DNA of 64,000 nt from sequence record OR844650.1, one strand, 5' to 3'. Numbering within the stretch: position 1 is the first letter of the stretch; each line of letters opens with the position of its first letter. Under the pieces are notes generated by a model, which ran no database searches, had not been told where the DNA came from, and was given only the letters and a program-made list of their open reading frames with translations. Below, in pieces: positions 1 to 64,000 of the stretch. Position numbers and translations under genes: made by a program.

Positions 1-261
1 AAAATCAACATCAGTTCTTACTTCTTTTCCTTCTTTGATGAATTGTTCAGTTGTCTTTTTAGCTGTACCACCACGAGTAGGATGACCCTGACCACACAAA
101 AAATTACTTGGAGTAATATTGAACTCACCAAAATCAGGGTCAATGATAGTTACTTTTGTTTTGTTATTGATGTACACAACTTTACTATAATCAAAATCTA
201 TATCAGTTCTTACTTCTTTTCCTTCTTTGATGAATTGTTCAGTAGTTTTTTTGGCTGTCAT
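1..261 (-). CDS. DUF723-like repeat protein, probable homing endonuclease; 3' part runs off the window
   Basis: Hand translation from ATG at 261, absent from the ORF track: MTAKKTTEQFIKEGKEVRTDIDFDYSKVVYINNKTKVTIIDPDFGEFNITPSNFLCGQGHPTRGGTAKKTTEQFIKEGKEVRTDVDF. About 45-bp DNA direct repeat at ~9-55 and ~200-246. Confidence 0.7.
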   Translation of the reverse strand, partial: MTAKKTTEQFIKEGKEVRTDIDFDYSKVVYINNKTKVTIIDPDFGEFNITPSNFLCGQGHPTRGGTAKKTTEQFIKEGKEVRTDVDF

Positions 262-299
262 TTTTCTTAATCCTTAGTACGTTTCGTTTCGATGAGTAC

Positions 300-337
300 A
301 TAATACAAAAAAGGGTGACCGAAGTCAACCCTTTTTT
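300..337 (-). terminator. Composite cUUCGg terminator and sigma70 promoter (TTGACT-17-TATTAT); -35 overlaps TGA stop of upstream gene
   Basis: Minus strand GGGTTGAC-TTCG-GTCACCC-TTTTTT-G-TATTAT. Confidence 0.85.
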
Positions 338-738
338 CTTTCAATCAAACATAGTCTACCAGAATGTACCATGCGATGGTGATTAGAACAAAGAATCATA
401 CACTTTCGAATTTCATCTTTGATAGCATCTCGACTTTTACTGAACATAGAACTTGGTGTATGATCTTTGGTATTAGGGTCAAGATGGTGAAAGTCTAAAC
501 ATTCTGGATACTTCATCATACAAATACTACAACCATAAAATGATTTAACTCTGGTCATGAAATCTTTATTTTTTCTTTTGATTTCTTCAAGTTTTTTGAC
601 ATCAGTTTTTTTATTTCTGGTTTTCTTACTGGTAATATTACTACAACCTTTGCATGTATTTCTATGTTTCCCAGTATCTTTTCTTATACCAAATTCACTA
701 ATGTCTTTTTCAATATTACACGTGATACACTTCTTCAT
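325..738 (-). CDS. HNH endonuclease with N-terminal CxxC zinc finger
   Basis: CITC..CKGC; CSIC...LDFHHLDP...CMILCSNHHRMVH. Confidence 0.85.
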   Translation of the reverse strand: MKKCITCNIEKDISEFGIRKDTGKHRNTCKGCSNITSKKTRNKKTDVKKLEEIKRKNKDFMTRVKSFYGCSICMMKYPECLDFHHLDPNTKDHTPSSMFSKSRDAIKDEIRKCMILCSNHHRMVHSGRLCLIERKKG

Positions 739-750
739 TGTTTAATCCAT

Positions 751-1038
751 TTATTCAACAATCCCCAACTTCACAATCTCATACCCGTCCAGATAGCCGT
801 AGGAACACTCAGGTGTTTCATAAGATGAACCATCATGGATGCCTTGGCATTGACTTTTGGAATTCTCAAGCAATCGTTGCAGTACTGATACGTCATCAAG
901 AACGTAATACAAGTTAGCATATAGGTCCGTTACAATACAGTACTCCAACATATCAAATGTATCAATCGAAATTTCAACCTTAGCAAATCGTTTCTTTTCT
1001 TTATTATACAGTGCGTACATATTAATCTCCATAATCAA
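751..1038 (-). CDS. hypothetical protein, paralog-like to 2883..3137
   Basis: MYALYNKEKKRF...YEIVKL resembles MFALRNKNTKEI...YEILQL. Confidence 0.7.
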   Translation of the reverse strand: MIMEINMYALYNKEKKRFAKVEISIDTFDMLEYCIVTDLYANLYYVLDDVSVLQRLLENSKSQCQGIHDGSSYETPECSYGYLDGYEIVKLGIVE

Positions 1039-1393
1039 GTTTAACTAACTTACCACCCAGATACCCAAAGTTTTCTGGCTTCGCATCTGAATAGAAGAAG
1101 TCAGTACTTAACTCTGAATTCAATGCTAAAGCACACAACTCCACCCAAAATAAACCCCTATGTTGTACTGGCTTACAACGTTTCTGTATAGTTACTAGTC
1201 CAGTACATGATGACCACAACGTAGGGCAGATACCACTATTACTACGCTTGGAGTACTGCATCCACGAACGTTCATTGAGGTTAGCTATCATCCCTGTTAA
1301 GAATAGCTTCCAACTTTTAAAGGTTGGAATCTTGATAGCATATTCCCCAATGAGTATGACAGTTCGTGTTGCACCTTTCAAATCTATATTCAT
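1022..1393 (-). CDS. minimal protein-kinase-like protein
   Basis: GATRTV..YAIKIP (beta3 Lys), DAKPENFG (catalytic loop), LDYG (DFG-like). Confidence 0.65.
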   Translation of the reverse strand: MNIDLKGATRTVILIGEYAIKIPTFKSWKLFLTGMIANLNERSWMQYSKRSNSGICPTLWSSCTGLVTIQKRCKPVQHRGLFWVELCALALNSELSTDFFYSDAKPENFGYLGGKLVKLDYGD

Positions 1394-1402
1394 ATTTTTT
1401 AA

Positions 1403-1654
1403 TTAGAAGAACACAAACCAAGTCCAGAATAAATTCCACACTACAAATAAAGACATAGTGGTTTTATGTACAATATCAGCAGTACTGGTCCATCCTCCAC
1501 CGTGTCCTATTCCATTTATGAATAGAACTAAGAACAAGATACCATTTACTACAATAGTACATAGTAAGTACACAAACACATTCCATGCAAGTTCAGGGGA
1601 TACTAACGTAAATGGTAAAACAATTAGTAGTATTAGAACTAATAAAATTTTCAT
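1403..1654 (-). CDS. small membrane protein
   Basis: Three hydrophobic segments. Confidence 0.7.
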   Translation of the reverse strand: MKILLVLILLIVLPFTLVSPELAWNVFVYLLCTIVVNGILFLVLFINGIGHGGGWTSTADIVHKTTMSLFVVWNLFWTWFVFF

Positions 1655-1682
1655 TTATCGCCTCACTTAATTAACGTGACAA

Positions 1683-1859
1683 TTAGTACGAATCAGATTC
1701 CCAGTACTCGATTGCTTCTTTCAGCAATTCTTTAGCACGTTGTTTTGCAATGCGAGCGGGTAACAGATATGTGTACATTAACTGTCGCTTCACTTCATTC
1801 AGTGAAAGCTGTTCATGGTACAGTGCATCCATCAGTCGATTACGAGTACGTAGTTTCAT
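1683..1859 (-). CDS. hypothetical protein, 58 aa (not in ORF track)
   Basis: MKLRTRNRLMDALYHEQLSLNEVKRQ...EYWESDSY; AAGGA SD upstream; fills the gap between neighbours. Confidence 0.65.
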   Translation of the reverse strand: MKLRTRNRLMDALYHEQLSLNEVKRQLMYTYLLPARIAKQRAKELLKEAIEYWESDSY

Positions 1860-1870
1860 ATAAGTTATCC

Positions 1871-2425
1871 TTATTTCAAAGAATCATAGTAAGCAGTGTC
1901 AAAGATTGGAGTCATAATAACATAGTCAATACGGTCAATGTAAGTTGAACTCCACATTTCTGGTTTGTCATATAACTGACGCTCGCGTTCATTCATACGA
2001 GTCAGTACTTCTTCCAATTTACTACGTGAATCCATCAATGTATTACTCGAACCATAAGTGAAGTACTCAGTCCAATGATATTCATATTCAGTACTGATAG
2101 ATTGAATAGTACCATCTTTGAAATGAGCTAAGGCATAACCTTTCTCTACAAAGTTATCAGGTGGAAGAACACCATCTGGATTAGTTTTCAAGGCTTGTGC
2201 TAACTTTTCTTTAATTTCAGTTAACGTGCATACTGAACGAATGTTCTTCAGGTTTGATACTTGAAAATCACTGTACTTTCCAAAGAAAAAGACACGCCAA
2301 TCTTTAGGTTCATTATCAGATACGGTAGCATTAGGATGATGGGCGAGTAAACGAAGAAGGCCAGCTTTATGACCGTTAATGTAGATTTCATGGATGTGGT
2401 TAGCAGTTTTCTTAAAAGTAATCAT
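1871..2425 (-). CDS. hypothetical protein
   Basis: 184-aa ORF, GAGGA SD, downstream of a consensus promoter. Confidence 0.75.
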   Translation of the reverse strand: MITFKKTANHIHEIYINGHKAGLLRLLAHHPNATVSDNEPKDWRVFFFGKYSDFQVSNLKNIRSVCTLTEIKEKLAQALKTNPDGVLPPDNFVEKGYALAHFKDGTIQSISTEYEYHWTEYFTYGSSNTLMDSRSKLEEVLTRMNERERQLYDKPEMWSSTYIDRIDYVIMTPIFDTAYYDSLK

Positions 2426-2473
2426 GGTAGTTCCTCGATTGTAGGGATGAGAAGTTCATCCCCCTTGATAAGC

Positions 2474-2501
2474 ATTATACAGTACTGAATGTGTTTGTCA
2501 A
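2474..2501 (-). promoter_or_regulatory. sigma70-type early promoter TTGACA-16-TATAAT with CAGTACTG abutting -10
   Basis: Minus strand TTGACA aacacattcagtactg TATAAT. Confidence 0.8.
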
Positions 2502-2502
2502 C

Positions 2503-2898
2503 TCAAAATAAATTCATTTCATGTGCGTATTGTGGTTCAAGATAAGATAAGTTTTTGAAACTGTCTTTCAATTCCGCAGCATCTACGTACACAGTACCAG
2601 GTACATTCCCCATAGTGAAGCCAACCCAAACAGACATGTTTCCAGTTCCTAAGCGGGGCATTGATAGCGTCCCATCAGGTGAAACATCAAACGCTACACT
2701 AAAGTCATCCGTTACAACTTCCGAACCATTTTCCAGAATAATACAACCACGTTCTTTAAGCTTCTGAATGTGGATAGCAGCCTCTACAGCACGTTTAAAG
2801 TTATAGTAAGACTCTTTATCCTCAAACATAGATTGTTTAACCAGACGCTTGTTTAGCTCGGTTACTTTGTGCATTTGACGCATTACTTCAACTCCCAC
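2503..2898 (-). CDS. hypothetical protein
   Basis: 131-aa ORF in operon. Confidence 0.7.
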   Translation of the reverse strand: MGVEVMRQMHKVTELNKRLVKQSMFEDKESYYNFKRAVEAAIHIQKLKERGCIILENGSEVVTDDFSVAFDVSPDGTLSMPRLGTGNMSVWVGFTMGNVPGTVYVDAAELKDSFKNLSYLEPQYAHEMNLF

Positions 2899-3137
2899 AG
2901 TTGTAGAATTTCATAAGAGCCTGGTGGTGCTGGATTGATAATCTCAGGGTATTCAGTACTGTTAGGATTACCACCAGCATTGAACTCAGCAAGTAATAAT
3001 TCGAGTTCATTCCTATCATGTACAACAAACACGCAATATCCAGTTCCTTCTTCAAGAACTGTAGTTGATCCCGCACAATCCCATACGGTATCTAAACATA
3101 ATATTTCTTTAGTGTTTTTGTTACGCAATGCAAACAT
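2883..3137 (-). CDS. hypothetical protein, paralog-like to 751..1038
   Basis: Shared N- and C-terminal motifs; GGAG SD. Confidence 0.7.
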   Translation of the reverse strand: MFALRNKNTKEILCLDTVWDCAGSTTVLEEGTGYCVFVVHDRNELELLLAEFNAGGNPNSTEYPEIINPAPPGSYEILQLWELK

Positions 3138-3146
3138 ATATGTCTC

Positions 3147-3491
3147 CTATCGATTCGGCATATTCTTTCGTAGTCGCAAGAGAAATTCAACCACTGACCA
3201 TGTTGCAATGAAGGCAATATAAGTTGCAAGGAATCCGGTAAGAATAAATGCAACCAGCGTACTACCATTTGGTGCAGCAGTTTTAATGCCGATGACACCA
3301 TCGACTACAGTGAAACATGTAGCCATGAATGTGTAACATACGTACAACACAAAGAAAAACTCATTCTCCATTGAAGGATAGAAACGGTTAAACACTTTAT
3401 AAAATTTAAAGTACAGTAGGATTATACCAACAAAGGCATAGAATGTAAACAGTGTTGTTATAATATATGAGATTAGGTTCAAATTATACAT
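3147..3491 (-). CDS. membrane protein, tandem paralog 1 of 3
   Basis: 3 TM segments; FKFYKVFNRFYP and C-terminal LRKNMPNR. Confidence 0.75.
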   Translation of the reverse strand: MYNLNLISYIITTLFTFYAFVGIILLYFKFYKVFNRFYPSMENEFFFVLYVCYTFMATCFTVVDGVIGIKTAAPNGSTLVAFILTGFLATYIAFIATWSVVEFLLRLRKNMPNR

Positions 3492-3492
3492 A

Positions 3493-3840
3493 TCAACGCT
3501 CCGGTAGATTATCACGTAATGTTTTAATTCGATGATACATTTTCATACCAATATTACCAAAGATACCATATCCAAGTACTAAAATGTATGCAATAAGCAT
3601 AGTAATAATTACTATAGTACCAAAACTATAATGTACACTACTGATACCCATTGTAGTTTCAACGATTATTTGAGAAACTGAAAGAATCAAAAGTACAACT
3701 ACAATTGGATGATTTGGGTACATTCGGTTGAACAACGTTTTGTACTTAAAGAAGCACAGTACTCCACCAAATAAGAAGTAAACAATGTAAATGCAAGCAA
3801 CAGCATAGGCAAACATGTTAGTGTAATAAATCATTACCAA
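3493..3840 (-). CDS. membrane protein, tandem paralog 2 of 3
   Basis: 3 TM segments; FKYKTLFNRMYP and C-terminal LRDNLPER. Confidence 0.75.
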   Translation of the reverse strand: MVMIYYTNMFAYAVACIYIVYFLFGGVLCFFKYKTLFNRMYPNHPIVVVLLILSVSQIIVETTMGISSVHYSFGTIVIITMLIAYILVLGYGIFGNIGMKMYHRIKTLRDNLPER

Positions 3841-3843
3841 TCC

Positions 3844-4182
3844 TTACTTTTCAGGGATATTAGAACGCCATATATCAATGCGATGAACTAGTCCAAAGAA
3901 CAACCATACTGGAACGGCAGCTATCATAACAACAAATGAAAACCCAGTCAAGACCGATACCAGATTTAATTCATCAGTACTATACCCACATATCAGTACT
4001 TCTAATATTCCCCACGTACATGCACAAAACATCAAGAATGAAATTGGGGCATCATAGTAGATACGTTCATATAAAGTAGTGTATCGGAAGAATGCAATAA
4101 TGTAGCAAAACATATAATACACCCAAACCAAAGATACTACATAAAATGATACTTTGTTTATTAATTCAAAATATTGTTCCAT
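3844..4182 (-). CDS. membrane protein, tandem paralog 3 of 3
   Basis: 3 TM segments; FRYTTLYERIYY and C-terminal WRSNIPEK. Confidence 0.75.
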   Translation of the reverse strand: MEQYFELINKVSFYVVSLVWVYYMFCYIIAFFRYTTLYERIYYDAPISFLMFCACTWGILEVLICGYSTDELNLVSVLTGFSFVVMIAAVPVWLFFGLVHRIDIWRSNIPEK

Positions 4183-4184
4183 TT

Positions 4185-4466
4185 TTACCCCAATATATAT
4201 TCAGAGAGTAATGTATTAGCTTCATCTTTGTTCTTAAGGTAATACATGTAATATAGATTCGGTTCACCATCTTTAGCACTCAAATCGAAGTACTTTAAAC
4301 TATGTACTTTCATAGTAAAAACAAATAATGACTTAAAACCAATCTCACCGTACTTAACAAATAGTTCATCCAAATGAATGTAACTTTTTGATTTGGATAA
4401 TTCTTTAACGTCTGCATCAATTTCAGATAAAAGATGCTTACCTATTAAGTTTTCAAATGAACGCAT
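4185..4466 (-). CDS. hypothetical protein
   Basis: 93-aa ORF with AAGGA SD. Confidence 0.7.
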   Translation of the reverse strand: MRSFENLIGKHLLSEIDADVKELSKSKSYIHLDELFVKYGEIGFKSLFVFTMKVHSLKYFDLSAKDGEPNLYYMYYLKNKDEANTLLSEYILG

Positions 4467-4527
4467 GATTTTATCCTTTACCGCAATTTTTATGGTTTAT
4501 TAAGAATACATCAGAACATCAGTTCTG

Positions 4528-5169
4528 TCAATAAAAAACTGGATCTTCTTCAGTAATTGGTATTTCTCTACGCACATCACACGAAAGAGGATCAGTAATG
4601 AATACATTCCCATCTTTATCCATCATTACATTACTTGAATGAATGTCTGGTACAAAACGCCCGTGAAACTCTTTCATGATGTTAGCAGCGACCGTCGCAA
4701 TAGCAATCTCTTCAGAATTTCCACGCATATCATTCACTGAAGTAGCGTACTGACCAGCATGTGCATAAGAATATAAATCTCCAATTTTAGTACTAACAAA
4801 GTCATCATAATTATTTTTTTGTTTAATTATAGGATAGTACTTGTCCATCTCATACCATCCAAAGTTTCCTTGTTCGTTGGCACTGTAGATCACTGGAAGA
4901 AACTTGGTTCCTGCGTTTTCAATGCAGTACTTTGCATAAGCACGAAAACCATCCCAGCGTGAAGTGGTTACTTTAAATGCTCGTCCAGGATAGTTTTTAT
5001 GTTCAACTACTACAGAGTACATCCCCATTCCAAGCAAAGTAAGTCCAGCAGCTTTAACTTGTGGAAAGATTACGCGTTCAGCATAAGGAATATCAAACTC
5101 CATCGCACAACGAGTTTTTGATGGACGCAAAATGTCAATTAAAGTTTTGAATATTTCTTGCTTAGTCAT
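4528..5169 (-). CDS. Ser/Thr protein kinase, T7 gp0.7-like
   Basis: LGMGMYSVV Gly loop, RAFKV, DIHSSNVMM catalytic loop, ITDP; start moved to MTKQ after GAGGA SD. Confidence 0.8.
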   Translation of the reverse strand: MTKQEIFKTLIDILRPSKTRCAMEFDIPYAERVIFPQVKAAGLTLLGMGMYSVVVEHKNYPGRAFKVTTSRWDGFRAYAKYCIENAGTKFLPVIYSANEQGNFGWYEMDKYYPIIKQKNNYDDFVSTKIGDLYSYAHAGQYATSVNDMRGNSEEIAIATVAANIMKEFHGRFVPDIHSSNVMMDKDGNVFITDPLSCDVRREIPITEEDPVFY

Positions 5170-5197
5170 TACTTTATCCTCTGTAGTTAATATCAAC

Positions 5198-5234
5198 ATC
5201 ATAACAAAAAAGGCTGACCGAAGTCAACCCTTTT
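5198..5234 (-). terminator. Composite cUUCGg terminator and promoter (TTGACT-18-TATGAT)
   Basis: GGTTGAC-TTCG-GTCAGCC-TTTTTT-GT-TATGAT. Confidence 0.85.
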
Positions 5235-5238
5235 ATTA

Positions 5239-5658
5239 TCATTTACAGTTTTCTATAACTATTGCACGTTTTAGTATTTTACTTTCATAAACATACTTAA
5301 GATGACCTTCTTCACGAATACGATTGAACACATATCCTAGTTTATCTTTTAGTACTGAAGCGGTATCAATGTCAAGATTAACTTCAACCCCTCCTGTTAA
5401 TTTAACTTTATATGTAAAGCTAAAAGCATCACCAGATTCAACCAATGGGACTACTTGTTCATACGTATTCAACATAACTCGTTCATCATTAACTAAATTA
5501 TATATTACTATATCACAAGTTTTTACCCCAATTTCCTCTAAGGTAGGAGCATTGTCTACTATAACATCTTTTACTGTATTAGCAACCTGTTTAGCATCTG
5601 CTGCATATACATTAAAACTAAAAAGTACTAAAATAATACTTAAAAAAATCTTTTTCAT
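5239..5658 (-). CDS. exported protein
   Basis: Signal peptide MKKIFLSIILVLFSFNVYA. Confidence 0.75.
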   Translation of the reverse strand: MKKIFLSIILVLFSFNVYAADAKQVANTVKDVIVDNAPTLEEIGVKTCDIVIYNLVNDERVMLNTYEQVVPLVESGDAFSFTYKVKLTGGVEVNLDIDTASVLKDKLGYVFNRIREEGHLKYVYESKILKRAIVIENCK

Positions 5659-5667
5659 TATATATCC

Positions 5668-5985
5668 TTATTTTATTTTACACGTCATATCGGGTTGTGC
5701 TGGTTTATTATTTTTAAACGGATTAGGTTTTTTATCTTTCTTTTTATCTTTTAAAGGTTTTTTGTCTTCTTTTTTATCTTTGTCTTTTTTATTTTTATCA
5801 GGTTCAGAGGGAGTATTACATTGTGCTGGGGGTTGATTAGTTGGAGTACAGCTATTGTCTGATGGGAGTATTACTTCTTTACAATTGTAAAATAGTAAAC
5901 TTTTATTTGTGGTTAAATTATGAAAACGATAGTTACGTTCATTATTATAATAAATTGTTTTAGTACTTTCAATGTCATTGCACAT
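5668..5985 (-). CDS. hypothetical protein with Lys/Asp-rich low-complexity tail
   Basis: PDKNKKDKDKKEDKKPLKDKKKDKKP. Confidence 0.55.
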   Translation of the reverse strand: MCNDIESTKTIYYNNERNYRFHNLTTNKSLLFYNCKEVILPSDNSCTPTNQPPAQCNTPSEPDKNKKDKDKKEDKKPLKDKKKDKKPNPFKNNKPAQPDMTCKIK

Positions 5986-5995
5986 TGCTACTGAA

Positions 5996-6247
5996 TCACC
6001 GGAACTCTTTTTCTATTCCCATTACATCAGTCTTACGCTCAGATAGTATACCTGAAGTATATGAATCTTTGTTGTCAAACGCATTAAATCCAATAGTTCT
6101 GTCGGTGTCGTGTATTATTCCTTTTGTGTATGAGGTAGTATAGAACTCCCCATTTCTGAAATCCTGCCTTGCTACTGAGCAATGATAATCTGCACCATAA
6201 GCAGTACTGGAAAATAATACAATTCCAAATATAATATATTTTTTCAT
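5996..6247 (-). CDS. small exported protein
   Basis: Signal peptide MKKYIIFGIVLFSSTAYG; the track start at 6307 is a TTG inside the terminator. Confidence 0.7.
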   Translation of the reverse strand: MKKYIIFGIVLFSSTAYGADYHCSVARQDFRNGEFYTTSYTKGIIHDTDRTIGFNAFDNKDSYTSGILSERKTDVMGIEKEFR

Positions 6248-6276
6248 TGTAATCCCTCTTCTTAATTCCTCTTTTG

Positions 6277-6313
6277 TATTTACAAAAAAAAGGCTGACCG
6301 AAGTCAACCTTTT
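6277..6313 (-). terminator. cUUCGg terminator followed by TAAATA late-promoter core
   Basis: GGTTGAC-TTCG-GTCAGCC-T8-G-TAAATA. Confidence 0.8.
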
Positions 6314-6319
6314 AAATGT

Positions 6320-7831: not shown

Positions 7832-7848
7832 TTTTTTCTCTATGTCTA

Positions 7849-7892
7849 TATTTATAGTATAAAGAAAAGGCTGACCGAAGTCAACCTTATTT
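7849..7892 (-). promoter_or_regulatory. Composite cUUCGg terminator, sigma70 promoter (TTGACT-17-TATACT) and overlapping late promoter TATAAATA
   Basis: GGTTGAC-TTCG-GTCAGCC-TTTTCTT-TATAC-TATAAATA. Confidence 0.85.
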
Positions 7893-7894
7893 TG

Positions 7895-13054: not shown

Positions 13055-13082
13055 ATTATACAGTACTACTAATGGTTGTCAA
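13055..13082 (-). promoter_or_regulatory. sigma70-type promoter TTGACA-16-TATAAT with AGTACTG abutting -10
   Basis: TTGACA accattagtagtactg TATAAT. Confidence 0.75.
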
Positions 13083-17367: not shown

Positions 17368-17395
17368 ATTATACAGTACTGATATCTTATGTCAA
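17368..17395 (-). promoter_or_regulatory. sigma70-type promoter TTGACA-16-TATAAT with CAGTACTG abutting -10
   Basis: TTGACA taagatatcagtactg TATAAT. Confidence 0.8.
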
Positions 17396-29723: not shown

Positions 29724-29770
29724 GATAGCTTCTATACATAAGGAGGAATCAGTACTGACTAGAAGCTATC
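29724..29770 (-). other. 11-bp hairpin with CCTCCTTA and a TCAGTACTGA palindrome in the loop
   Basis: GATAGCTTCTA-gtcagtactgattcctccttatgta-TAGAAGCTATC on minus strand. Confidence 0.6.
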
Positions 29771-29783
29771 GGGTTAAACGATT

Positions 29784-32315: not shown

Positions 32316-32923
<608 letters not shown>

Positions 32924-32974: not shown

Positions 32975-32999
32975 ATTATATCAGTACTGAACTATTTAG

Positions 33000-33003
<4 letters not shown>
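32975..33003 (-). promoter_or_regulatory. Repeated promoter, copy 2 (TTGACT-17-TATAAT)
   Basis: 23-bp identity with copies 1 and 3. Confidence 0.85.
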
Positions 33004-33413
<410 letters not shown>

Positions 33414-34581: not shown

Positions 34582-34917
<336 letters not shown>

Positions 34918-37079: not shown

Positions 37080-37090
37080 TTTATTTCCTT

Positions 37091-37120
37091 AAAAAAATAC
37101 CCAGTACTTGACTGGGTATT
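37091..37120 (-). terminator. intrinsic terminator
   Basis: AATACCCAGT/ACTGGGTATT 10-bp stem plus T-tract. Confidence 0.75.
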
Positions 37121-37133
37121 TACAAAGTAACGT

Positions 37134-43288: not shown

Positions 43289-43819
43289 TTATTCAAGTAT
43301 AGTAATTTCAATTAAACGAATTTCGATAAACTCGTTTTCAGTTTCCCATGACGTGCCAAATTTCTTTTCAAGTTCAGATTTCACATCACTTTTAAATTTT
43401 CCCATAGTATTAGGAATAATTTGTTTGGTTAATTTGTCGTAACCACAATAAAACATAGGTTTCTCCCTTCGAGATATTAGCTGAACAAAATCTTTTGGAT
43501 ATGCAGGTATGTTATGCATCACTTCATGAATACACTCAGTACTTGAATCTTGTACTTTGTACATTACATTAAGTTTACCTCTGAAATTTGCGGTCATATC
43601 AACAATAGTTCCTTTACCCGATTTAAGTAAAGTTCCATTCTTTGAATGAGAGCAATAAAATACCTCATCACCAATATTAGGATAATACAAATTAAATTCT
43701 AATTCAGATTTTACAGCCAGCCGTTTGAAACTTTCTGTACGTTTTATATAAGTTTGGTATTTGTTTATGTTCAAAAGAATATCTCTCTTAGTAAATGTGA
43801 TATAACTGGCATAGTCCAT
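43289..43819 (-). CDS. hypothetical protein
   Basis: 176-aa ORF. Confidence 0.65.
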   Translation of the reverse strand: MDYASYITFTKRDILLNINKYQTYIKRTESFKRLAVKSELEFNLYYPNIGDEVFYCSHSKNGTLLKSGKGTIVDMTANFRGKLNVMYKVQDSSTECIHEVMHNIPAYPKDFVQLISRREKPMFYCGYDKLTKQIIPNTMGKFKSDVKSELEKKFGTSWETENEFIEIRLIEITILE

Positions 43820-44631
43820 CCATTCCCAAGCATTTTGTATGCTTGTGTCTTACTAGACACTTTAAAGAAATCTTCAGGAACACCCTGTAATTTACAACAT
43901 TCTACTACACTTAAGTGTCTATAGTCAATATTTCTTTTGCCATTCTCTAATAGATATTGACGACTGATCACTGGGTCACGAAACACCAATTGTCGTCTGG
44001 ATTTATTAAAGTACTGGTTACAATCACCACCTTTAAAATAGTTAGCATCTATACAGTACGAAGCGGTTCTGTCAGTGTACCAACCATCTTCAATAATATC
44101 TTGAAGTTTAGGTGCATTGGATAATGCAGGTGGTATAAAAAGCTTATCAGTACTGTACCAGTAATATCTCTGCCTGAAGTGAGGCGTATAATGCTGGGAG
44201 TTTATCAGTACTGGCGTGATTCCTAAAATACTATTAATGTATTCTTTGAAATCTTCCTTCATTTTAACATTTTCAAACAGAAATTTCAAGTTAGGATTGA
44301 GACTTTTGATATGATCAAAAATTTCAACCATTACTAAAAATAACTGCCCACGTATATCATTTAAACCACCCTGTTTACCTGCAACTGACCAGGCTTGGCA
44401 TGGGAAACCACCCATTAATAAATCTATTTTGTCCCACTCAATATCCCATTCTCTCCACTTAGTTACATCACCCAATTGGATAATATCAGGAAAGTTAGAT
44501 TGAGATTCAGCTATTGCGTACTTATCAATTTCGGATGAATAATATTTTTCAACTGGGATACCCGCATCTTGCAATGCCATATATCCCACACTCATTCCAT
44601 TAAAAAGAGAAAGTACTCGGATAGGTTTCAT
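43771..44631 (-). CDS. DNA (cytosine-5)-methyltransferase, orphan
   Basis: Motif I VLSLFNGM, motif IV GGFPCQ, motif VI FENV, motif VIII RQRYYW, motifs IX-X LSVVECCKLQG..YKMLGNGW. Confidence 0.92.
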   Translation of the reverse strand: MKPIRVLSLFNGMSVGYMALQDAGIPVEKYYSSEIDKYAIAESQSNFPDIIQLGDVTKWREWDIEWDKIDLLMGGFPCQAWSVAGKQGGLNDIRGQLFLVMVEIFDHIKSLNPNLKFLFENVKMKEDFKEYINSILGITPVLINSQHYTPHFRQRYYWYSTDKLFIPPALSNAPKLQDIIEDGWYTDRTASYCIDANYFKGGDCNQYFNKSRRQLVFRDPVISRQYLLENGKRNIDYRHLSVVECCKLQGVPEDFFKVSSKTQAYKMLGNGWTMPVISHLLREIFF

Positions 44632-56210: not shown

Positions 56211-56295
56211 TTAGTATTCCTCGTTTAATTTAATATGATGTGCTGCTCTGTGATAAACATTATACGGACAGCACGTATGATAGTCAAGTATTTTT

Positions 56296-57423: not shown

Positions 57424-57464
57424 TATAAAACCTCATAATCAATTAAAATTTACGCTATGGTGAT

Positions 57465-57493
57465 ATTGTACATACTTCGACTACACATGTCAA
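57465..57493 (-). promoter_or_regulatory. sigma70-type promoter TTGACA-17-TACAAT
   Basis: Near-consensus. Confidence 0.75.
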
Positions 57494-57504
57494 CACCTGA
57501 AAAG

Positions 57505-57534
57505 AAAAAAGGACGCACCTTAGTGCATCCTTTT
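57505..57534 (-). terminator. intrinsic terminator
   Basis: GGATGCAC-taag-GTGCGTCC-T6. Confidence 0.8.
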
Positions 57535-58338
57535 GTTACTTTTATCCTTGTACCATACAAATGTCTTGACAGGTGGATATTTTTCATTCTTTGGTGGTTC
57601 AGGCATGTCGTATACAGTTGCATTTCTAAACTTAAGAATGTATGTGTCCATTAAACGGATTATACAATAGTTTAAACATTTTTGTGCTCTTTCTTTCCAA
57701 AAATGTTTATATGGTTCTGGACAACCAAGATAATCAAGTTTATACATACTCATAGCAACTTGCATAAATCTTTGGGCCGAGAATTTTCGCTTATCAATCT
57801 TACTTGCTCTGTGTTGGTCACATGTCCAACTTGATACACCAGGCAAGTGACAAAACAAATCAAAACTAACCATACTATCAAAGTATTTGTTATGACCATG
57901 TAACTCACCATAAAATACAGCTTCTGACACAGTATCATATAATGAGAAATTTGAATGTATATGTTCATTATCAAAAATACTTTTTAAATCTTTATAAGTT
58001 TCTGGAACAGGTGGCTCAGGTAATACTTCACCGAATACTTCAACACACCATATCTTCCATAAACCTTTTGTAAATTTATTTTCTAATTCTCTATCACTAT
58101 CAATATAAAAAGTTTTTTCATTTATGAAAACTTTTCTAGCCATGTATGCTTTAAAAATTGCATCTGGATCAATGTCTTCACGATTTACATCATCCCAGCC
58201 TTTACCAATTCTTGAAATTTCAAATCTACGCATATACATACGACATGCTAAATCTTTAGTAAGGCTGCGACGATACTTTTCATCCTGATGTAATTTGGTT
58301 GTTTCGTGAAGAGATTTAAGCATATTTAAAATTCTCAT
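57520..58338 (-). CDS. hypothetical protein, 272 aa
   Basis: Long ORF. Confidence 0.75.
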   Translation of the reverse strand: MRILNMLKSLHETTKLHQDEKYRRSLTKDLACRMYMRRFEISRIGKGWDDVNREDIDPDAIFKAYMARKVFINEKTFYIDSDRELENKFTKGLWKIWCVEVFGEVLPEPPVPETYKDLKSIFDNEHIHSNFSLYDTVSEAVFYGELHGHNKYFDSMVSFDLFCHLPGVSSWTCDQHRASKIDKRKFSAQRFMQVAMSMYKLDYLGCPEPYKHFWKERAQKCLNYCIIRLMDTYILKFRNATVYDMPEPPKNEKYPPVKTFVWYKDKSNKRMH

Positions 58339-59015
58339 CGCAACACCAAATATTTCCCGTTTCTTCCAATTACATATTGATCACCACTTCGTAGTACTGT
58401 ATAGCTTTCCCCTAGTATGGAACTAAGACGCGAAGTGTCTAATTGTGTATCATTCTTTAATAACTTTTTCACATATGTTTCTGAAACAAAACCGCTTCCA
58501 GTACTGTAATGTAATTTACCATATGCTGTTTTTAATGTCAACATGTTTCCTTCTTTGATTACTGAAACACCAGCATAATCAAGGAACTCACTAATTGAAC
58601 TAGGAATACCCAAATCAATTCTCTGCTGTATTTCTTCAAAATCAACATCGATTGGGTCATTAACACCATATAGTTGTATTTTCCAACCTGGGTCTGGACA
58701 AATATTTTCAATAGTTTTAATTAAACGTAAAAGTTTTTCAGGGAATTCGGCATTTCGTTCCATTTCAACATAAACTTGATATCGACCATCTAAATTTGGT
58801 GTTTCTGCTGCTTCTGTATCAGCTACATCAATAGGTGATTTTTCAATAAAAGAAGATAAATCATATGCTGCATCAAAATTGTTAAGTACCTGAAACATAA
58901 TAACAATATTACTATCTTCAATTTTAGGAGTATATTCATCAACACTAATGATAGGATGAATCAAATCTTTGAGAACTTGCGGACGTAAGCCTTGTTCATT
59001 TAATTTCTTTTTCAT
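58335..59015 (-). CDS. conserved jumbo-phage hypothetical protein
   Basis: LNEQGLRP..DLIHPIISVDEYTPKI..AAYDLSSFIEK. Confidence 0.75.
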   Translation of the reverse strand: MKKKLNEQGLRPQVLKDLIHPIISVDEYTPKIEDSNIVIMFQVLNNFDAAYDLSSFIEKSPIDVADTEAAETPNLDGRYQVYVEMERNAEFPEKLLRLIKTIENICPDPGWKIQLYGVNDPIDVDFEEIQQRIDLGIPSSISEFLDYAGVSVIKEGNMLTLKTAYGKLHYSTGSGFVSETYVKKLLKNDTQLDTSRLSSILGESYTVLRSGDQYVIGRNGKYLVLR

Positions 59016-59578
59016 TACATTCCACCTTCTTGTGTCTCATCCGTTACTTCTACATCTAAATCCACATCATCACCAGTTACAGGTTCTTCAATATTCTCAG
59101 GAGAATTCATTGGATTACTATTGAATTCTGCTGCCATTAGTTTATATTCATCAAAACTTTCTGGATTAATCAAGTTTCGTGGAATCTGCACTCTAACCAA
59201 TAGTACTGGGATTCTTTCATTTTTTGGTATACGTACAGAGCCAGATTGTGTCGCTACACTTTTCATGTCAGCTTGACGATTTGGTTCTTTAATAGGAGTT
59301 ATTTCATAATCAGCTTTAACATATACTTTAGTTCCATGTTTCTCTAAAATAGAGAATGCGGTAGGATCGGGAAAATTTTCACGATAGTATTTAAATGTAA
59401 CAGTACACCAATACTTACTTACAATTGGCCCCTCTACCAACTCACCCTCAATAATTCCTTTATACGCATATAAATCATTATCATCGAAATATTTCTCTAC
59501 AGCAAGAAGTATATCTAACATACCACTGTTATCATACAACTGCTGAATAGCATTATCTGTATAATCTAAATCGTCCAT
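59015..59578 (-). CDS. conserved jumbo-phage hypothetical protein
   Basis: VEKYFDDNDLYAY..GELVEGP..SKYWCTVTF..PDP; TAAATA upstream at 59616-59621. Confidence 0.75.
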   Translation of the reverse strand: MDDLDYTDNAIQQLYDNSGMLDILLAVEKYFDDNDLYAYKGIIEGELVEGPIVSKYWCTVTFKYYRENFPDPTAFSILEKHGTKVYVKADYEITPIKEPNRQADMKSVATQSGSVRIPKNERIPVLLVRVQIPRNLINPESFDEYKLMAAEFNSNPMNSPENIEEPVTGDDVDLDVEVTDETQEGGM

Positions 59579-59639
59579 ATTTTATATTATCCTTAAAAAC
59601 TAGCACATATAATACTATTTACTACTTTTAAAATACAAC

Positions 59640-59662
59640 AAAAGGGGTTTGAATCAAACCCC
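59640..59662 (-). terminator. intrinsic terminator
   Basis: GGGGTTTG-att-CAAACCCC followed by T-tract. Confidence 0.75.
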
Positions 59663-59674
59663 AATTTAAAAGTT

Positions 59675-60301
59675 TTATTTGTAATATTTACCTAGTACTG
59701 AATAAATTTTCAGTCTAAGTTCTGTCCAGTTTTCGATATATTCAAAACCACTATGATTCTTATACATAGTATTATGAGAACATCCCATCATAACTGATGG
59801 AATACCAAGACCCATAGCAGTTTCAATATTATTGATATAATCATCAATCATTAGTTTTACATCATATCGTGTTTGTAAATCCTCTAATGCTTCTTTCTTT
59901 GATTCATTCATTTCTATGATAATAATCTCATCAAAGCAGTTTTCACCAAATTCACGCATTAGATTTACATTTCGTAAAACTTCACCATAGCCTTTTTTAC
60001 CACATTTTGTGAGTACTACGAATTTTTCTTTATGAAAACGATCACGTAGCTCTTGTACAATATCAACTGTATTTGGTTCGACTGGCTTTAACAACCCAAA
60101 CAAATATGATTGTTGGTTGAACTGTCCAAGAATCTTTTTAACTTCAGGTTGAGGAACACCCAACCAGTCTGATAAATCATATTCTAATGGGTATGGTGTT
60201 GATGGTGTGATATTATAAGTTTGTTTTACAAACTCAGAAAGCATACCCATATGGTCCAATAGAACTTCATCACAATCAAAAACTATACAACGTGGTTTCA
60301 T
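59675..60301 (-). CDS. HAD-superfamily 5'(3')-deoxyribonucleotidase
   Basis: Motif I FDCDEVL, motif II VVLT, motif IV MIDD. Confidence 0.8.
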   Translation of the reverse strand: MKPRCIVFDCDEVLLDHMGMLSEFVKQTYNITPSTPYPLEYDLSDWLGVPQPEVKKILGQFNQQSYLFGLLKPVEPNTVDIVQELRDRFHKEKFVVLTKCGKKGYGEVLRNVNLMREFGENCFDEIIIIEMNESKKEALEDLQTRYDVKLMIDDYINNIETAMGLGIPSVMMGCSHNTMYKNHSGFEYIENWTELRLKIYSVLGKYYK

Positions 60302-61254
60302 TACATGTTCCCCGAACAAATTAGGTCAATCTCACACAGTAAAGCACTAAGATTCATTTCACGGTCTGATACTGTTGCTTGCTTAACAACTGCATCACGA
60401 ATTTTAACTTTAATCTTCATCAGTGTGATTTCATCAGTACTGAACATTTCAGCATTACGATACAGATAAGAAAAGAATGCATCCATCTCATCATCAGGGA
60501 TATTTTGTACAATTTGTTCACGCATTTGGCGAATGTTTCCTGCCTTTAATGCTTCAACAATTGCAGTACGATACCCTGCTGAATTTTCAATACTATCTTC
60601 AAGTTTTACTAGCTTACCATCAACAACTGAACTTTGCAATACGTTTAGTGTTTTACGGAAATCAGGATAGGAAGCATTGATATACTTTTGAACTTGTTCA
60701 ACACTATCATCACTACTCAAATCAACACCTTCTGCTAGAAGAATATTATAAATTCGAGTCATGAATTGTTCCATATCATGCTTTTCGATTGTAATAACTT
60801 GAACACGAGAAATGATAGGTTTTTGAATTTTATGTGGTTCGTTACTTGTTAAAATAAAGCGAGCGTTTTCATGGTAGTCTTCCATTACACGTTTCAAACT
60901 ACCTTGTGCTTTATGGTTCATCTGCTCCATTTCTTCAAGAACAAAGATACGATACCTACCAAAACATGATAGCTTTGCTGCGGCATCGATTTTATCACGA
61001 ACTGCATCAATACCCTCATCCGACATGTTAAGCGTAGTCACATCACTTGGGTCAAGGTGTCCATTCTGTACCAATCCATTAATGAGTACTTTGATCGCAG
61101 ATGTTTTACCAGTTCCTGCTGGGCCAAAAAACCCAATATGTGGAATGTCACCAGTTTTAATCCATTCTTCCATTTTCTGGCGTAGTGCATCATTTTTTGA
61201 TACATAATCTTCCATTGATTGTGGGCGATATTTTTCAGTCCATAGTGTGGTCAT
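60301..61254 (-). CDS. sliding-clamp loader ATPase subunit (T4 gp44/RFC small subunit-like)
   Basis: LWTEKYRP, Walker A GPAGTGKT, Walker B-like FVLEEME, PIISRV (SRC-like). Confidence 0.92.
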   Translation of the reverse strand: MTTLWTEKYRPQSMEDYVSKNDALRQKMEEWIKTGDIPHIGFFGPAGTGKTSAIKVLINGLVQNGHLDPSDVTTLNMSDEGIDAVRDKIDAAAKLSCFGRYRIFVLEEMEQMNHKAQGSLKRVMEDYHENARFILTSNEPHKIQKPIISRVQVITIEKHDMEQFMTRIYNILLAEGVDLSSDDSVEQVQKYINASYPDFRKTLNVLQSSVVDGKLVKLEDSIENSAGYRTAIVEALKAGNIRQMREQIVQNIPDDEMDAFFSYLYRNAEMFSTDEITLMKIKVKIRDAVVKQATVSDREMNLSALLCEIDLICSGNM

Positions 61255-61277
61255 TTTTATTTCCTTATGTGTACGTG

Positions 61278-61550
61278 TTATAGAATCCAATCGGCTGAAT
61301 TATATAATAAAGCCGTGAAAAGTTCTTCTGTCATTTCCAATTGATTTAATAAAAAATTAAAAGAATTTGCCTTATTTTTAATCCCAGTACTTTCAGCTTG
61401 GGCCGATGCAACTAATAAAACTTTAAACATATCATGTGAAACTTCATATACATATTTGGTATTTTTTCTATCTTCAAACATGAATCTTCCGTTTTTAGAT
61501 ACTAATGTTACATCCTTGAAACTAAATTTTCCATCATCAGTTATCATCAA
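61278..61550 (-). CDS. hypothetical protein
   Basis: 90-aa ORF. Confidence 0.65.
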   Translation of the reverse strand: MMITDDGKFSFKDVTLVSKNGRFMFEDRKNTKYVYEVSHDMFKVLLVASAQAESTGIKNKANSFNFLLNQLEMTEELFTALLYNSADWIL

Positions 61551-61603
61551 AATCTGTCCAAATAAAAAGCCCAGATATTCATCCGAGCTTTAATTATATT
61601 TTA

Positions 61604-61930
61604 TTAACGACCAAAGGTTAGCATTTTAGTTCGTGGATCTTCATCTGAAACTAAACTAACTGCGGCTGGATAATCAACCAAGTTTAATTCAATACCATCA
61701 ACTTCAATAGTTCTTGACCATCGACCATGATCAATTAAAATCCATTGACCTTCTTTAATATCAGTAATGTCTTCGCCTACAGAATAAACTTTTGCCCAGC
61801 GAGAACGAATACCTCTAATTTTACCGTCATCGTTTGTTAAAACGATACCACCTGCTGTTTTGCGTTCACCATGTTCCAGTTCAGTTACCAGTACTTTACC
61901 TTTACATGCAGTCATTACTTTATTAGTCAT
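61604..61930 (-). CDS. groES: co-chaperonin GroES
   Basis: KVLVTELEHGERKTAGGIVL mobile loop; AKVYSVG; IKEGQWIL. Confidence 0.88.
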   Translation of the reverse strand: MTNKVMTACKGKVLVTELEHGERKTAGGIVLTNDDGKIRGIRSRWAKVYSVGEDITDIKEGQWILIDHGRWSRTIEVDGIELNLVDYPAAVSLVSDEDPRTKMLTFGR

Positions 61931-61938
61931 TTAATATA

Positions 61939-62283
61939 TTACTCCTGATCTTTGGTTCTAGCTCGACGTGGTGCTTTCTTCTCTTCAGAAACCTCAGCTT
62001 CTTGTTCTTCGGGCTTAACTTCAAAACTCTCATCATCCCATACTTCATCCGTACCATGTTCAGTACTATGAAGTTGATGTTCAGGGATATAATCAGGAAT
62101 TTGCATTTCTCGTTCTTTTTCTTGAATCAACTCTTCACGAGTTTTAATAATTGTTCCACCGGAACCGATTTTATCACCACGTGCGTTTAGATTAGCATTA
62201 CCCAATGCTACCTGATGTTGATTTTGGTACTTGAGCATATCCATGTCAATTGTTGTACCACGATAAGTTGTATGTTTAGACAT
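61939..62283 (-). CDS. conserved jumbo-phage hypothetical protein
   Basis: TYRGTTIDMDML..ALGNANLNARGDKIGSGGTIIKTREE. Confidence 0.75.
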   Translation of the reverse strand: MSKHTTYRGTTIDMDMLKYQNQHQVALGNANLNARGDKIGSGGTIIKTREELIQEKEREMQIPDYIPEHQLHSTEHGTDEVWDDESFEVKPEEQEAEVSEEKKAPRRARTKDQE

Positions 62284-62346
62284 ATCAAAATCCTTTTATT
62301 GTATGTGTGATATAAGCCTACAATAAACATTATATCACATGTTTTT

Positions 62347-62865
62347 CTACCATTTCAAAAATTCGTTAACATCAAGTTCGTACTTCAATGAATCTACCAT
62401 ATGTAGTCCAATCAAAAACAAACAGTATGATGCAACAGAGCTTCCACGACCTAGACCCCAAAAGATCTCATTTTCTTCCATATAATCAACAAGCCATATC
62501 ATACATCTTAGTAGCTTTGTCATATTATAATATTCATATAAATCAAGTTCATACTCAACACGTTTTCGTGCTTCATCGGATGTGCATTTTTGTAAGAAAA
62601 AGTCACGCAGATTTATATTGTCGTATACTGGATCATATCGCCACAGTTCATGATTTTTATCATGCTCAATTGTATAATCCAGCATACGTTGTTCTAAGCC
62701 AAATTTTTTACAGTTATCATTGAATTTCAACCTTTCAGGTTCATCAATTTCCTGCAATTGTAAGTACTGGATATCTGCACCGCAATTGATTGCATAAACA
62801 ACTGCGTTAAGATTACATTTCACATCACCATTGGGACTTATAAATCTGTTTCCTTGTACTTTCAT
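62347..62865 (-). CDS. stand-alone fragment of DNA polymerase III alpha (DnaE)-like protein
   Basis: RVEYEL..LVDYMEENEIFWGLGRGSSVASYCLFLIGLHMVDSLKYEL; ends before the PDID catalytic motif. Confidence 0.75.
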   Translation of the reverse strand: MKVQGNRFISPNGDVKCNLNAVVYAINCGADIQYLQLQEIDEPERLKFNDNCKKFGLEQRMLDYTIEHDKNHELWRYDPVYDNINLRDFFLQKCTSDEARKRVEYELDLYEYYNMTKLLRCMIWLVDYMEENEIFWGLGRGSSVASYCLFLIGLHMVDSLKYELDVNEFLKW

Positions 62866-63136
62866 TTTTCTTCTTCTGGGCCTCTTCGTTGTCAGTTAGA
62901 TATGAATCCATATCGAAGATACATGGGTCTTCTTCGTCATAAACAGTTTTTTCTTTTTGTCCTTGGCGAAGTTCTAGTTCAGCATAACATTGATTTAAGA
63001 CAGTTTGCATATTACCAATAATCATGTCGCTTAGGCCAGCAGCACGAGCAGAAGTTAAACGCATAGACTGTTCATTAATTTTTAACTGTAGTTCTTTTTC
63101 CGTCATTCCAGACGGGTCAAAAAACGGATTAAACAT
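62825..63136 (-). CDS. hypothetical protein
   Basis: 103-aa ORF, GGAGG SD. Confidence 0.7.
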   Translation of the reverse strand: MFNPFFDPSGMTEKELQLKINEQSMRLTSARAAGLSDMIIGNMQTVLNQCYAELELRQGQKEKTVYDEEDPCIFDMDSYLTDNEEAQKKKNESTRKQIYKSQW

Positions 63137-63137
63137 A

Positions 63138-63953
63138 TTAACCTCCTATGTTATTGTTTTGCAATGTAATCAAAAATGTATCTGAAACATAATTCACTGA
63201 TTCATGCGAAAAGTATCCGAATTCAACCGATGTGATTTCGAACTCTACACCTACCATTGTACCATGTTCATTGTTCTGAAGTAAAGTGTTGAAAAATGCT
63301 TCACCTTTCCCTGGTTGACAATATGCAACTGGAATGATAGGCATGAATTTTTTCTGTATACCATCTTCAATGTATGGGTGATTCATAAATCTTGGAACCG
63401 TATCAAGCATTTCATCACTGATACTTGGTATCGCATCAACGTATAGACCACGATTTTGTAAATCGGTTGGGTCTTTTACTAAGTTGGTTGTGTCTTCACC
63501 AATAGCCTGAAAAATATTTTGTCGTAAACCAAATAATTCACCAAGCTGACCGTTGTCGATTTGAGTATATTGACGTGGATTTTTGGATACAGATACTAAA
63601 GATCCTTCAGGTAAAACCTCTCTATATAATAGATCATATTGTAAGTTACCTTGATTGTCAAGTGCTGATATTATTTTATAATTACCCATTACCATTTTAA
63701 ATTTTCCATTTGGAATAGTAGTTCCATTTGGGTTAATTATACTATTTCTCAATACTTTCTTGATATCAGAAAGGTTAGTATATGGATACGTTTGACTTAG
63801 GAAGTTTTCTTTCAATAACATCTTCGGTATTTTCTGAAGACCATATCTATTGTCAGATTGTCGGAAAAATAGTTGATTAGTGAATGATGAAGTACTGATA
63901 CATTTAAACCATTCTCTCTCAAATGCAACCGAAGGTAATACATGTGCACTCAA
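63138..63953 (-). CDS. hypothetical protein, 271 aa
   Basis: Long ORF. Confidence 0.7.
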   Translation of the reverse strand: MSAHVLPSVAFEREWFKCISTSSFTNQLFFRQSDNRYGLQKIPKMLLKENFLSQTYPYTNLSDIKKVLRNSIINPNGTTIPNGKFKMVMGNYKIISALDNQGNLQYDLLYREVLPEGSLVSVSKNPRQYTQIDNGQLGELFGLRQNIFQAIGEDTTNLVKDPTDLQNRGLYVDAIPSISDEMLDTVPRFMNHPYIEDGIQKKFMPIIPVAYCQPGKGEAFFNTLLQNNEHGTMVGVEFEITSVEFGYFSHESVNYVSDTFLITLQNNNIGG

Positions 63954-64000
63954 ATAATTCTGTCCGAATCCTCTTACAATCTTAAGGTTAAATATTTTTC

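Follow-up and report, generated by a model that had tools for sequence, protein, structure and literature searches.

The stretch of DNA analysed here, hereafter the window, comprises positions 1-64000 of the genome of Escherichia phage ECO103 4-12-1 (OR844650, 351,992 bp) and carries over its entire length (1..64000, unstranded) a field of 163 copies of the palindrome AGTACT, 35 of which have the full octamer form CAGTACTG. The mean spacing of the copies is 389 bp and the largest gap 1437 bp. The window further holds about 130 open reading frames (ORFs), nearly all on the minus strand (129 of 140 ORFs share one strand), seven transfer RNA (tRNA) genes and a gene for an orphan C5 cytosine DNA methyltransferase. 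Its first 20 kb are 100% identical to OR844650 1-20000, where the methyltransferase gene has the same coordinates, and are 96-98% identical to 121Q, PBECO4, phAPEC6, G17 and Sharanji. On this sequence identity the phage is placed in the genus Asteriusvirus of the Rak2-like jumbo myoviruses (121Q/Rak2 group).

Excess and conservation of AGTACT

The 163 copies of AGTACT compare with 21.5 expected from mononucleotide composition, 17.4 from dinucleotide composition and 32.8 from a second-order Markov model, to which we added dinucleotide-preserving shuffles and two codon-aware controls: a synonymous-codon shuffle within genes, which keeps protein and codon usage, and a codon permutation. The excess amounts to 7.6 to 9.4-fold on the composition models and 3.8 to 6.9-fold on the codon-aware ones, so that the approximately tenfold over-representation put forward in the original prediction, which had been made from the letters of the window, was a fair figure. 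The same holds for its details: the 15 coordinates given for the first 4 kb are all exact, with C preceding 12 of the 15, the dozen or so sites given for 58-64 kb were counted as 12, and the GC content, put by eye at about one third, is 33.4%.

The octamer is far more extreme than the hexamer. CAGTACTG was expected 0.71 +/- 0.87 times in dinucleotide-preserving shuffles of the window, with a shuffle maximum of 3, and in the combined 148.5 kb of Asteriusvirus sequence used for octamer and GCGC counts it heads the over-represented octamers, with 89 copies where 1.48 are expected. Among all 4096 hexamers of the window CAGTAC, GTACTG and AGTACT are the three most over-represented. The enrichment is nested, from 2.25-fold for GTAC over 7.6-fold for AGTACT to approximately 59-fold for CAGTACTG, and every layer adds to it. 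A further comparison with 180 hexamers of the same composition revealed no equal enrichment elsewhere: the runner-up has 62 copies and overlaps AGTACT, and the median is 20.5.

Coding constraints do not account for the excess. Coding sequences contain 138 sites, as against 36.5 +/- 5.2 after the synonymous-codon shuffle (z = 19.5) and 20.1 after codon permutation (z = 26), and AGTACT is as dense in coding DNA (2.53 per kb) as outside it (2.58 per kb). All three reading frames are used, as had been claimed, with 60, 46 and 32 sites, and 25 of the 163 sites lie partly or wholly outside coding sequences. The two codon-aware shuffles and the equal non-coding density rule out codon usage or dipeptide bias as the cause. 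Repeats or paralogues are likewise ruled out as the source of the count, because the 40-nt flanks of the sites are mutually unrelated.

The context of the sites is symmetric. With strand composition allowed for, C before and G after AGTACT are preferred equally (2.6 and 2.8-fold), and weaker A/T preferences extend further outside the 8-bp motif; we interpret the equal preference on both sides as pointing to recognition of duplex DNA by an agent of two-fold symmetry. Single changes at the outer C or G of CAGTACTG leave an 8 to 14-fold enrichment, whereas single changes inside AGTACT leave 0.6 to 4.3-fold, with the exception of A>G at position 2 (7.7-fold, on 12 observations). The spacing of AGTACT was never clustered in the 8 loci compared and is more even than random in the window (coefficient of variation 0.83, P = 0.01), in 121Q 1-50 kb (0.72) and in Pectobacterium phage CBB (0.77), an evenness that we regard as suggestive only.

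Proteins pay for the motif. Ser-Thr pairs are encoded AGT-ACT in 60 of 97 cases, where codon usage predicts 15; A precedes 46 of the 65 Val-Leu pairs encoded GTA-CTN; and the arrangement nAG-TAC-Tnn occurs 30 times against 2.9 expected. The Ser-Thr and Val-Leu dipeptides themselves are approximately 1.45-fold in excess, which indicates that the amino-acid sequence has been shifted as well and not just the choice of codons. AGT is also the most used serine codon of the window (383 against 55 AGC), and 60 AGT codons begin AGT-ACT sites. A serine tRNA with the anticodon ACT, which reads AGU, is predicted by ARAGORN at 32413-32504 on the minus strand, and the same gene is annotated in 121Q; an A34 serine tRNA is unusual in bacteria.

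Comparison with relatives demonstrates that the sites are retained. Between the window and UE-S1 (88.5% identity) 81 of 111 aligned sites are kept, against 53.5 predicted from codon-position-specific rates. Divergence from UE-S1 at third codon positions is 0.089 inside and 0.206 outside the sites, that of non-coding DNA 0.049 inside and 0.112 outside, and divergence from 121Q is 0.0115 inside and 0.0327 outside. Substitution in the AGTACT sites is thus 2 to 3 times slower than in the matched background, which we interpret as selection. Changes between the window and 121Q, polarised with UE-S1 as outgroup, comprise 11 gains and 5 losses of AGTACT, whereas neighbour counts and divergence give a neutral expectation of approximately 3.4 gains and 21 losses, so that fixation has been biased toward the motif. 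Recent gains arose mainly from AGAACT/AGTTCT and AGCACT, i.e., by changes at the two central positions. Over greater distances, 11 of 21 sites in core genes of 121Q stand at the same codon position in their Rak2 orthologues (2.5 expected from identity), and in the same test against the IMG/VR contig L008 8 of 24 sites are co-located (2.5 expected). About half of the sites are very long-lived, others turn over, and the density is maintained.

Distribution of AGTACT and GCGC among phages and hosts

The excess is found across the enterobacterial Rak2-like phages sampled, a comparison that the original prediction had proposed as a check. Observed/expected ratios are 4.6, 7.8 and 13 in three 50-kb blocks of 121Q (L001-L003), 6.7 in UE-S1, 9.5 in CBB, 7.5 in Klebsiella phage Muenster, 7.3 and 6.7 in two Rak2 loci, 5.1 in a 366-kb IMG/VR contig and 16 in a 31-kb Logan contig; the enriched set, with 4.6 to 16-fold excess, thus consists of 121Q, UE-S1, CBB, Muenster, Rak2, L008 and L022. 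No excess was detected in nine contigs with a terminase 43-45% identical (0.5 to 1.9), nor in 70 other viral contigs. The related phage PA5oct, of the same GC content, has one AGTACT where 10 are expected, and phi92 none where 11.9 are expected. This distribution implies that the excess arose in, and has been kept by, the enterobacterial Rak2-like clade. The host does not share it. In a 50-kb sample of E. coli MG1655 (1.00-1.05 Mb) AGTACT occurs 3 times against 11.6 expected, i.e., 0.06 per kb, and its density in the phage (2.5 per kb) is 42 times as high.

The excess is accompanied by the complete absence of another palindrome. GCGC does not occur in the window, where dinucleotide shuffles predict 27.5 +/- 3.9 copies, or in the 148.5 kb of Asteriusvirus sequence (126 expected), and is likewise absent from CBB, Muenster, Rak2, L008 and L022, so that more than 250 kb of DNA from the clade contain none (window, L001-L005, L008, L019, L022 and L023). 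AGTACT excess and GCGC absence occur together in every genome sampled that has the excess. CCGG (0.19), CGCG (0.21) and GGCC (0.42) are below expectation in the clade as well. By contrast, GCGC is normal in phi92 (37 against 40 expected), PA5oct (28 against 20) and most distant relatives, and the E. coli sample has 6.8 copies per kb, or one per 146 bp. As phi92 also infects E. coli yet retains a normal GCGC frequency, it is more likely that the purge is caused by something encoded in the clade than by host enzymes. We also considered whether AGTACT or GTAC derive from double deamination of methylated GCGC, which we reject, as approximately 48 GCGC are expected against a surplus of 244 GTAC and about 140 AGTACT. 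Neither the motif nor the GCGC gap was mentioned in what full-text searches of open-access papers returned, or under keywords for the motif and for DNA modification in the papers on Sharanji, CBB and phAPEC6; the clade-wide scope of the AGTACT excess and the accompanying absence of GCGC go beyond the first observation of the motif in the window.

Several further word biases and gaps were observed in the same sequences. In four of the IMG/VR contigs with a terminase 43-45% identical (L011, L012, L013 and L017) the word CCAGTG/CACTGG, which is not a palindrome, exceeds expectation 6.5 to 8.8-fold, and CAGCTG is about 5-fold in excess in L011 and L017. The Chi octamer GCTGGTGG/CCACCAGC occurs 15 times in the 148.5 kb of Asteriusvirus sequence against 0.81 expected, oriented with the genes in the window and in 121Q 1-100 kb and in both orientations in 121Q 100-150 kb; CTGGTG, CACCAG and like words are 4 to 5-fold enriched. 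In a region with one site per 226 bp, the longest stretch free of AGTACT (L003 10822-12871, corresponding to 121Q 110822-112871) coincides with 121Q gene 221. Its product bears the annotation endonuclease or restriction enzyme and contains two CapR homology domains (PF21817); the gene may be a recent acquisition. As a general rule, the idea that motif-free gaps are mobile genes fails, and gene 221 is its single striking case.

Promoters, hairpins and methyltransferases

The original prediction had located the motif in promoters, terminator stems and tRNA-Gly, and sites in promoters, terminator hairpins and tRNA-Gly do exist. Sigma-70-type promoters were searched with the pattern TTGAC[AT]-N16-18-TA[TA]AAT, which has 18 matches in the window, all on the gene strand (minus). 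In six of them the motif stands just upstream of the -10 hexamer. It abuts the hexamer at 2474..2501 (TTGACA-N16-TATAAT, CAGTACTG), 13055..13082 (AGTACTG), 17368..17395 (CAGTACTG) and 33385..33412 (TTGACT-N16-TATAAT, CAGTACTG), and CAGTACTG supplies the TG of an extended -10 at 32515..32543 (TTGACT-N17-TAAAAT) and 32975..33003 (TTGACT-N17-TATAAT). The proportion is 10 of 16 in 121Q 100-150 kb. Comparable promoters of CBB, Muenster, Rak2 and L022 lack the motif, although the genome-wide excess is still present. Two terminator-like hairpins followed by a T run, both on the minus strand, contain the motif in the loop region (CAGTACTG, 29725..29780, fold -17.2 kcal/mol) or as AGTACT at the tip (37085..37125, -17.6 kcal/mol), and tRNA-Gly(tcc) at 34823..34895 (minus strand) has AGTACT at 34863-34868. 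Altogether about 10 of the 163 sites fall in promoters or hairpins, six in promoters and about 3 in hairpins. The position next to the -10 is an Asteriusvirus-specific use of the motif and not the cause of its excess; a promoter or terminator element as cause is rejected on the small number of promoter sites, the restriction of the promoter link to Asteriusvirus and the lack of an intergenic concentration. TAAATA, which resembles the core of T4-type late promoters, is approximately 4-fold under-represented genome-wide (93 against 377).

The C5 methyltransferase (43771..44631, minus strand, 286 aa; Pfam PF00145, E = 7.5e-38) is one candidate writer of the motif. In the PDB its full-length matches are DNMT3 catalytic domains, and M.HhaI and M.HaeIII match its catalytic N-terminal part. 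Each Rak2-like genus has an orthologue, and orthologues of 64-100% identity occur in Asteriusvirus, Mimasvirus, Alcyoneusvirus, two Erwinia phages, Xanthomonas phage XbC2 and EJP2. This clade-wide presence would fit a link with the motif, and a monophyletic clade counts as one observation. The ORFs adjoining the gene have no recognisable domains; an overlapping ORF of 176 aa (43289-43819), considered as a partner gene, could be assigned to no family and lacks conservation in both CBB and Muenster. Adenine methyltransferases are also reported for these phages in the accounts of Sharanji and phAPEC6 (PMC11895373, PMC7247149).

The UE-S1 orthologue of the C5 enzyme (L007 1729-3609) is interrupted in frame by about 1 kb of additional sequence immediately downstream of the catalytic motif GFPCQ, at a point equivalent to the vicinity of position 44400 of the window, and encodes 626 instead of 286 aa; the added sequence resembles an intein or some other mobile insertion. 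The tblastn matches to the methyltransferase in TH47, JNE01, ph0011 and A4 likewise begin only at residue 78. Small unrelated phages with a homologue of this methyltransferase family (L020, L026, L036, L074, L078, L089 and others) have GCGC 2 to 4-fold over-represented, contrary to what is seen in the Rak2-like phages.

Possible readers of the motif and known systems

At the level of selection the data support a functional mark of the whole genome that is comparable to HIP1. The reading that we favour, with a probability of roughly 0.4, is that (C)AGTACT(G) is a lineage-specific, selected, genome-wide DNA word, the phage counterpart of the cyanobacterial HIP1 (highly iterated palindrome 1), and is read on the duplex by a two-fold-symmetric protein of the clade, most likely a part of its modification machinery; modification-linked recognition is our best current guess of the mechanism. 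One of the orphan methyltransferases of the clade would modify AGTACT or its GTAC core, and the modified palindrome would be a positive label, dense and rather evenly distributed over the phage DNA, possibly used for discrimination of self from non-self, for chromosome organisation or for control of the early promoters that carry the motif. The argument runs through restriction. Avoidance of AGTACT in phi92, PA5oct and the E. coli sample is the usual signature of restriction pressure on a word, and the avoidance of GCGC, CCGG, CGCG and GGCC in the clade indicates that its members have no blanket immunity. The approximately 900 AGTACT per genome (extrapolated from about 2.5 per kb) would then have to be specifically protected, most simply by the phage's own methyltransferase.

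Several observations weigh against modification. The step from avoidance of AGTACT elsewhere to modification in this clade is one that we infer and not a result. The C5 enzyme is very small, and the DNMT3 domains to which it is structurally related over its full length are specific for CpG, so that a short target is more to be expected than one of 6 to 8 bp. Its specificity could be read neither from database source names, which are uninformative, nor from the homologues at 36-55% identity, whose 70 viral contigs have no accompanying AGTACT excess. There is no excess of C-to-T losses at the C position of the motif. 5-Methylcytosine in an A-C context would be a substrate of McrBC, and the host field of the Sharanji record is K-12 MG1655. 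A preference that is graded over 8 bp would suit a DNA-binding protein no less than a methyltransferase, and the even spacing is significant in 3 of the 8 loci only.

The main rival, which we consider doubtful, is that the motif is the binding site of an abundant, sequence-specific and dimeric phage protein, nucleoid-organising or histone-like and comparable to TF1 of Bacillus phage SPO1, with no involvement of methylation. Such a protein would cover the DNA of the phage and, in the case of Asteriusvirus, block the early promoters with the motif by the -10 as well. The graded, symmetric 8-bp preference with weaker A/T preferences beyond, the spacing that is never clustered and in three loci more even than random, the abutment of CAGTACTG on the -10 (6 of 18 promoters in the window, 10 of 16 in 121Q 100-150 kb), the conservation of sites and the fixation bias all agree with this explanation. 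It does not sit well with the persistence of the genome-wide excess in CBB, Muenster, Rak2 and L022, where the promoter link is absent, it finds no DNA-binding domain among the neighbours of the methyltransferase or the 20 largest ORFs of the window, and alone it leaves the tolerance of hundreds of restriction-type sites unexplained. A preference of a type II topoisomerase, be it the T4-like enzyme of the phage, host gyrase or topoisomerase IV, for cutting or binding at the motif, whose density would help to unlink a 350-kb genome, appears very improbable. The clade does encode a T4-type topoisomerase II (121Q genes 52 and 53), and the GTAC core agrees with the habit of type IIA enzymes, whose cuts are staggered by 4 bases with a preference for G at +1 and C at +4; but the sequence selectivity of type II enzymes is loose, and more distant relatives lack the motif, which would tell against the idea provided that they keep the same topoisomerase.

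It is also conceivable, if quite improbable, that the sites accumulated by neutral molecular drive, in which biased repair or gene conversion makes AGTACT from near-cognate words with no benefit to the phage, similar to the Vsr-driven excess of CCWGG in E. coli or the methyl-dependent repair that Elhai proposed for HIP1. Gains above and losses below the neutral level are predicted by drive as well as by selection, near-cognate words are mildly enriched and not depleted, and a methyltransferase is present. The gains, however, came about by several different mutations, for the most part A/T transversions as well as transitions that affect the two central positions, and not by the T:G-to-C:G route alone, as would be the case with a Vsr-type system. 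AGTATT and AATACT stand at 0.68 and 0.94 of expectation, and CAGTATTG/CAATACTG is 1.9-fold enriched like other inner mutants. Moreover, the spacing tends to evenness, and amino-acid sequences are bent to the motif, at a cost hardly to be expected from a weak drive. A drive by Vsr-type repair in particular is rejected, as the deamination neighbours are not specially depleted and at most one of the 11 recent gains is of the T-to-C type. Of the functions offered in the original prediction, a mark at the level of duplex DNA rather than a coding by-product is supported, whereas the footprint of a Vsr-type methylation-coupled repair agrees neither with the neighbours nor with the gains. Largely refuted, and with hardly any probability left, is an effect at the level of RNA or translation (a motif in messenger RNA, a codon-pair preference or a contact between self-complementary RNAs) or a by-product of promoters, terminators, repeats or word avoidance. 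The 129 of 140 ORFs on one strand mean that nearly all sites are transcribed, and some sites do lie in promoters and terminator hairpins. Against this stand the equal non-coding density, the use of all three frames, flank preferences that remain symmetric with strand composition allowed for, the survival of the excess in both codon-aware shuffles, the mere 10 or so of 163 sites in promoters and hairpins, the unrelated flanks and a loss of GCGC that is too small (48 expected lost against 244 extra GTAC).

The contrast of AGTACT and GCGC between phage and host hints at a possible scheme of self and non-self. A further reading, which we judge unlikely, is a two-word code of the Rak2-like phages with CAGTACTG as the positive and GCGC as the negative mark. 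A GCGC-directed nuclease of the phage would attack host DNA only, or, alternatively, a methyltransferase would expose host DNA to the host's own methyl-dependent restriction, and the machinery reading AGTACT would act on phage DNA only. Irrespective of mechanism, the motif is a simple signature for Rak2-like jumbo phage DNA in metagenomes and can be used to spot recently acquired DNA inside Rak2-like genomes.

Among known systems the closest likeness is with HIP1 (GCGATCGC) of cyanobacteria, whose properties were taken from PMC4390886 and PMC5861425, and the analogy drawn in the original prediction is borne out on the properties that could be compared. CAGTACTG exceeds its expectation by at least the approximately 15-fold used to recognise HIP-type palindromic octamers, and it shares five descriptive properties with HIP1. 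Both are octamer palindromes that occur about once in 0.4 to 2 kb, tens of times as often as expected; in both the inner 4-mer and 6-mer are enriched as well; the 1-nt variants concentrate at the first and last base, a tolerance of the outer positions that Elhai noted likewise for HIP1 (PMC4390886); the sites are conserved within and between genes; and the genomes encode orphan methyltransferases. Abundant HIP1-type palindromes are further characterised by one or more methyltransferases specific for the nested inner sequence (PMC4390886, PMC5861425), a role for which the clade-wide C5 enzyme is a candidate. A periodicity of 10-90 kb has been reported for HIP1; within the 64 kb of the window the short-range spacing of AGTACT is random to slightly even. 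Unlike HIP1, the phage word has a different, AT-rich sequence and is carried by a virus lineage instead of a cellular phylum, and the E. coli host sample avoids the word instead of sharing it. Highly iterated palindromes have been known from cyanobacteria for three decades without an agreed function. Here such an element is found in a culturable coliphage with a 350-kb genome, and the laboratory host and the short list of candidate enzymes make the question approachable by experiment.

Other systems resemble the phage motif in part. As with Vsr and CCWGG in E. coli, a palindromic word of methyltransferase type departs from expectation in a genome that encodes a C5 methyltransferase. The Vsr bias consists of an excess of CCWGG and a deficit of CTAG, and the AGTACT effect is far larger; in addition, the deamination neighbour of AGTACT is not depleted, the gains lie off the T-to-C path, and those parts of the genome that were examined showed no Vsr. 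Chi, the DNA uptake sequence of Neisseria and the uptake signal sequence of Haemophilus are likewise short words that are denser in self DNA and kept by selection or drive, but these are asymmetric and have known readers (RecBCD and the uptake machinery), whereas the AGTACT word is palindromic. The SlmA-binding site of E. coli, GTGAGTACTCAC, shares the AGTACT core. The sites of the window are nevertheless not SlmA sites: G precedes AGTACT in 10 of 163 cases, GAGTACTC occurs once, GT is not enriched at positions -3/-2, and the GTG...CAC flanks are thus lacking. With respect to the avoidance of restriction sites the sign is reversed, as AGTACT is a type II site (ScaI/Eco255I) and yet 7.6-fold in excess, in a genome that obeys the avoidance for GCGC, CCGG, CGCG and GGCC. 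Phages normally purge palindromes of the restriction type; this clade keeps AGTACT and purges GCGC wholly, which implies a specific system of protection or recognition, so far undescribed.

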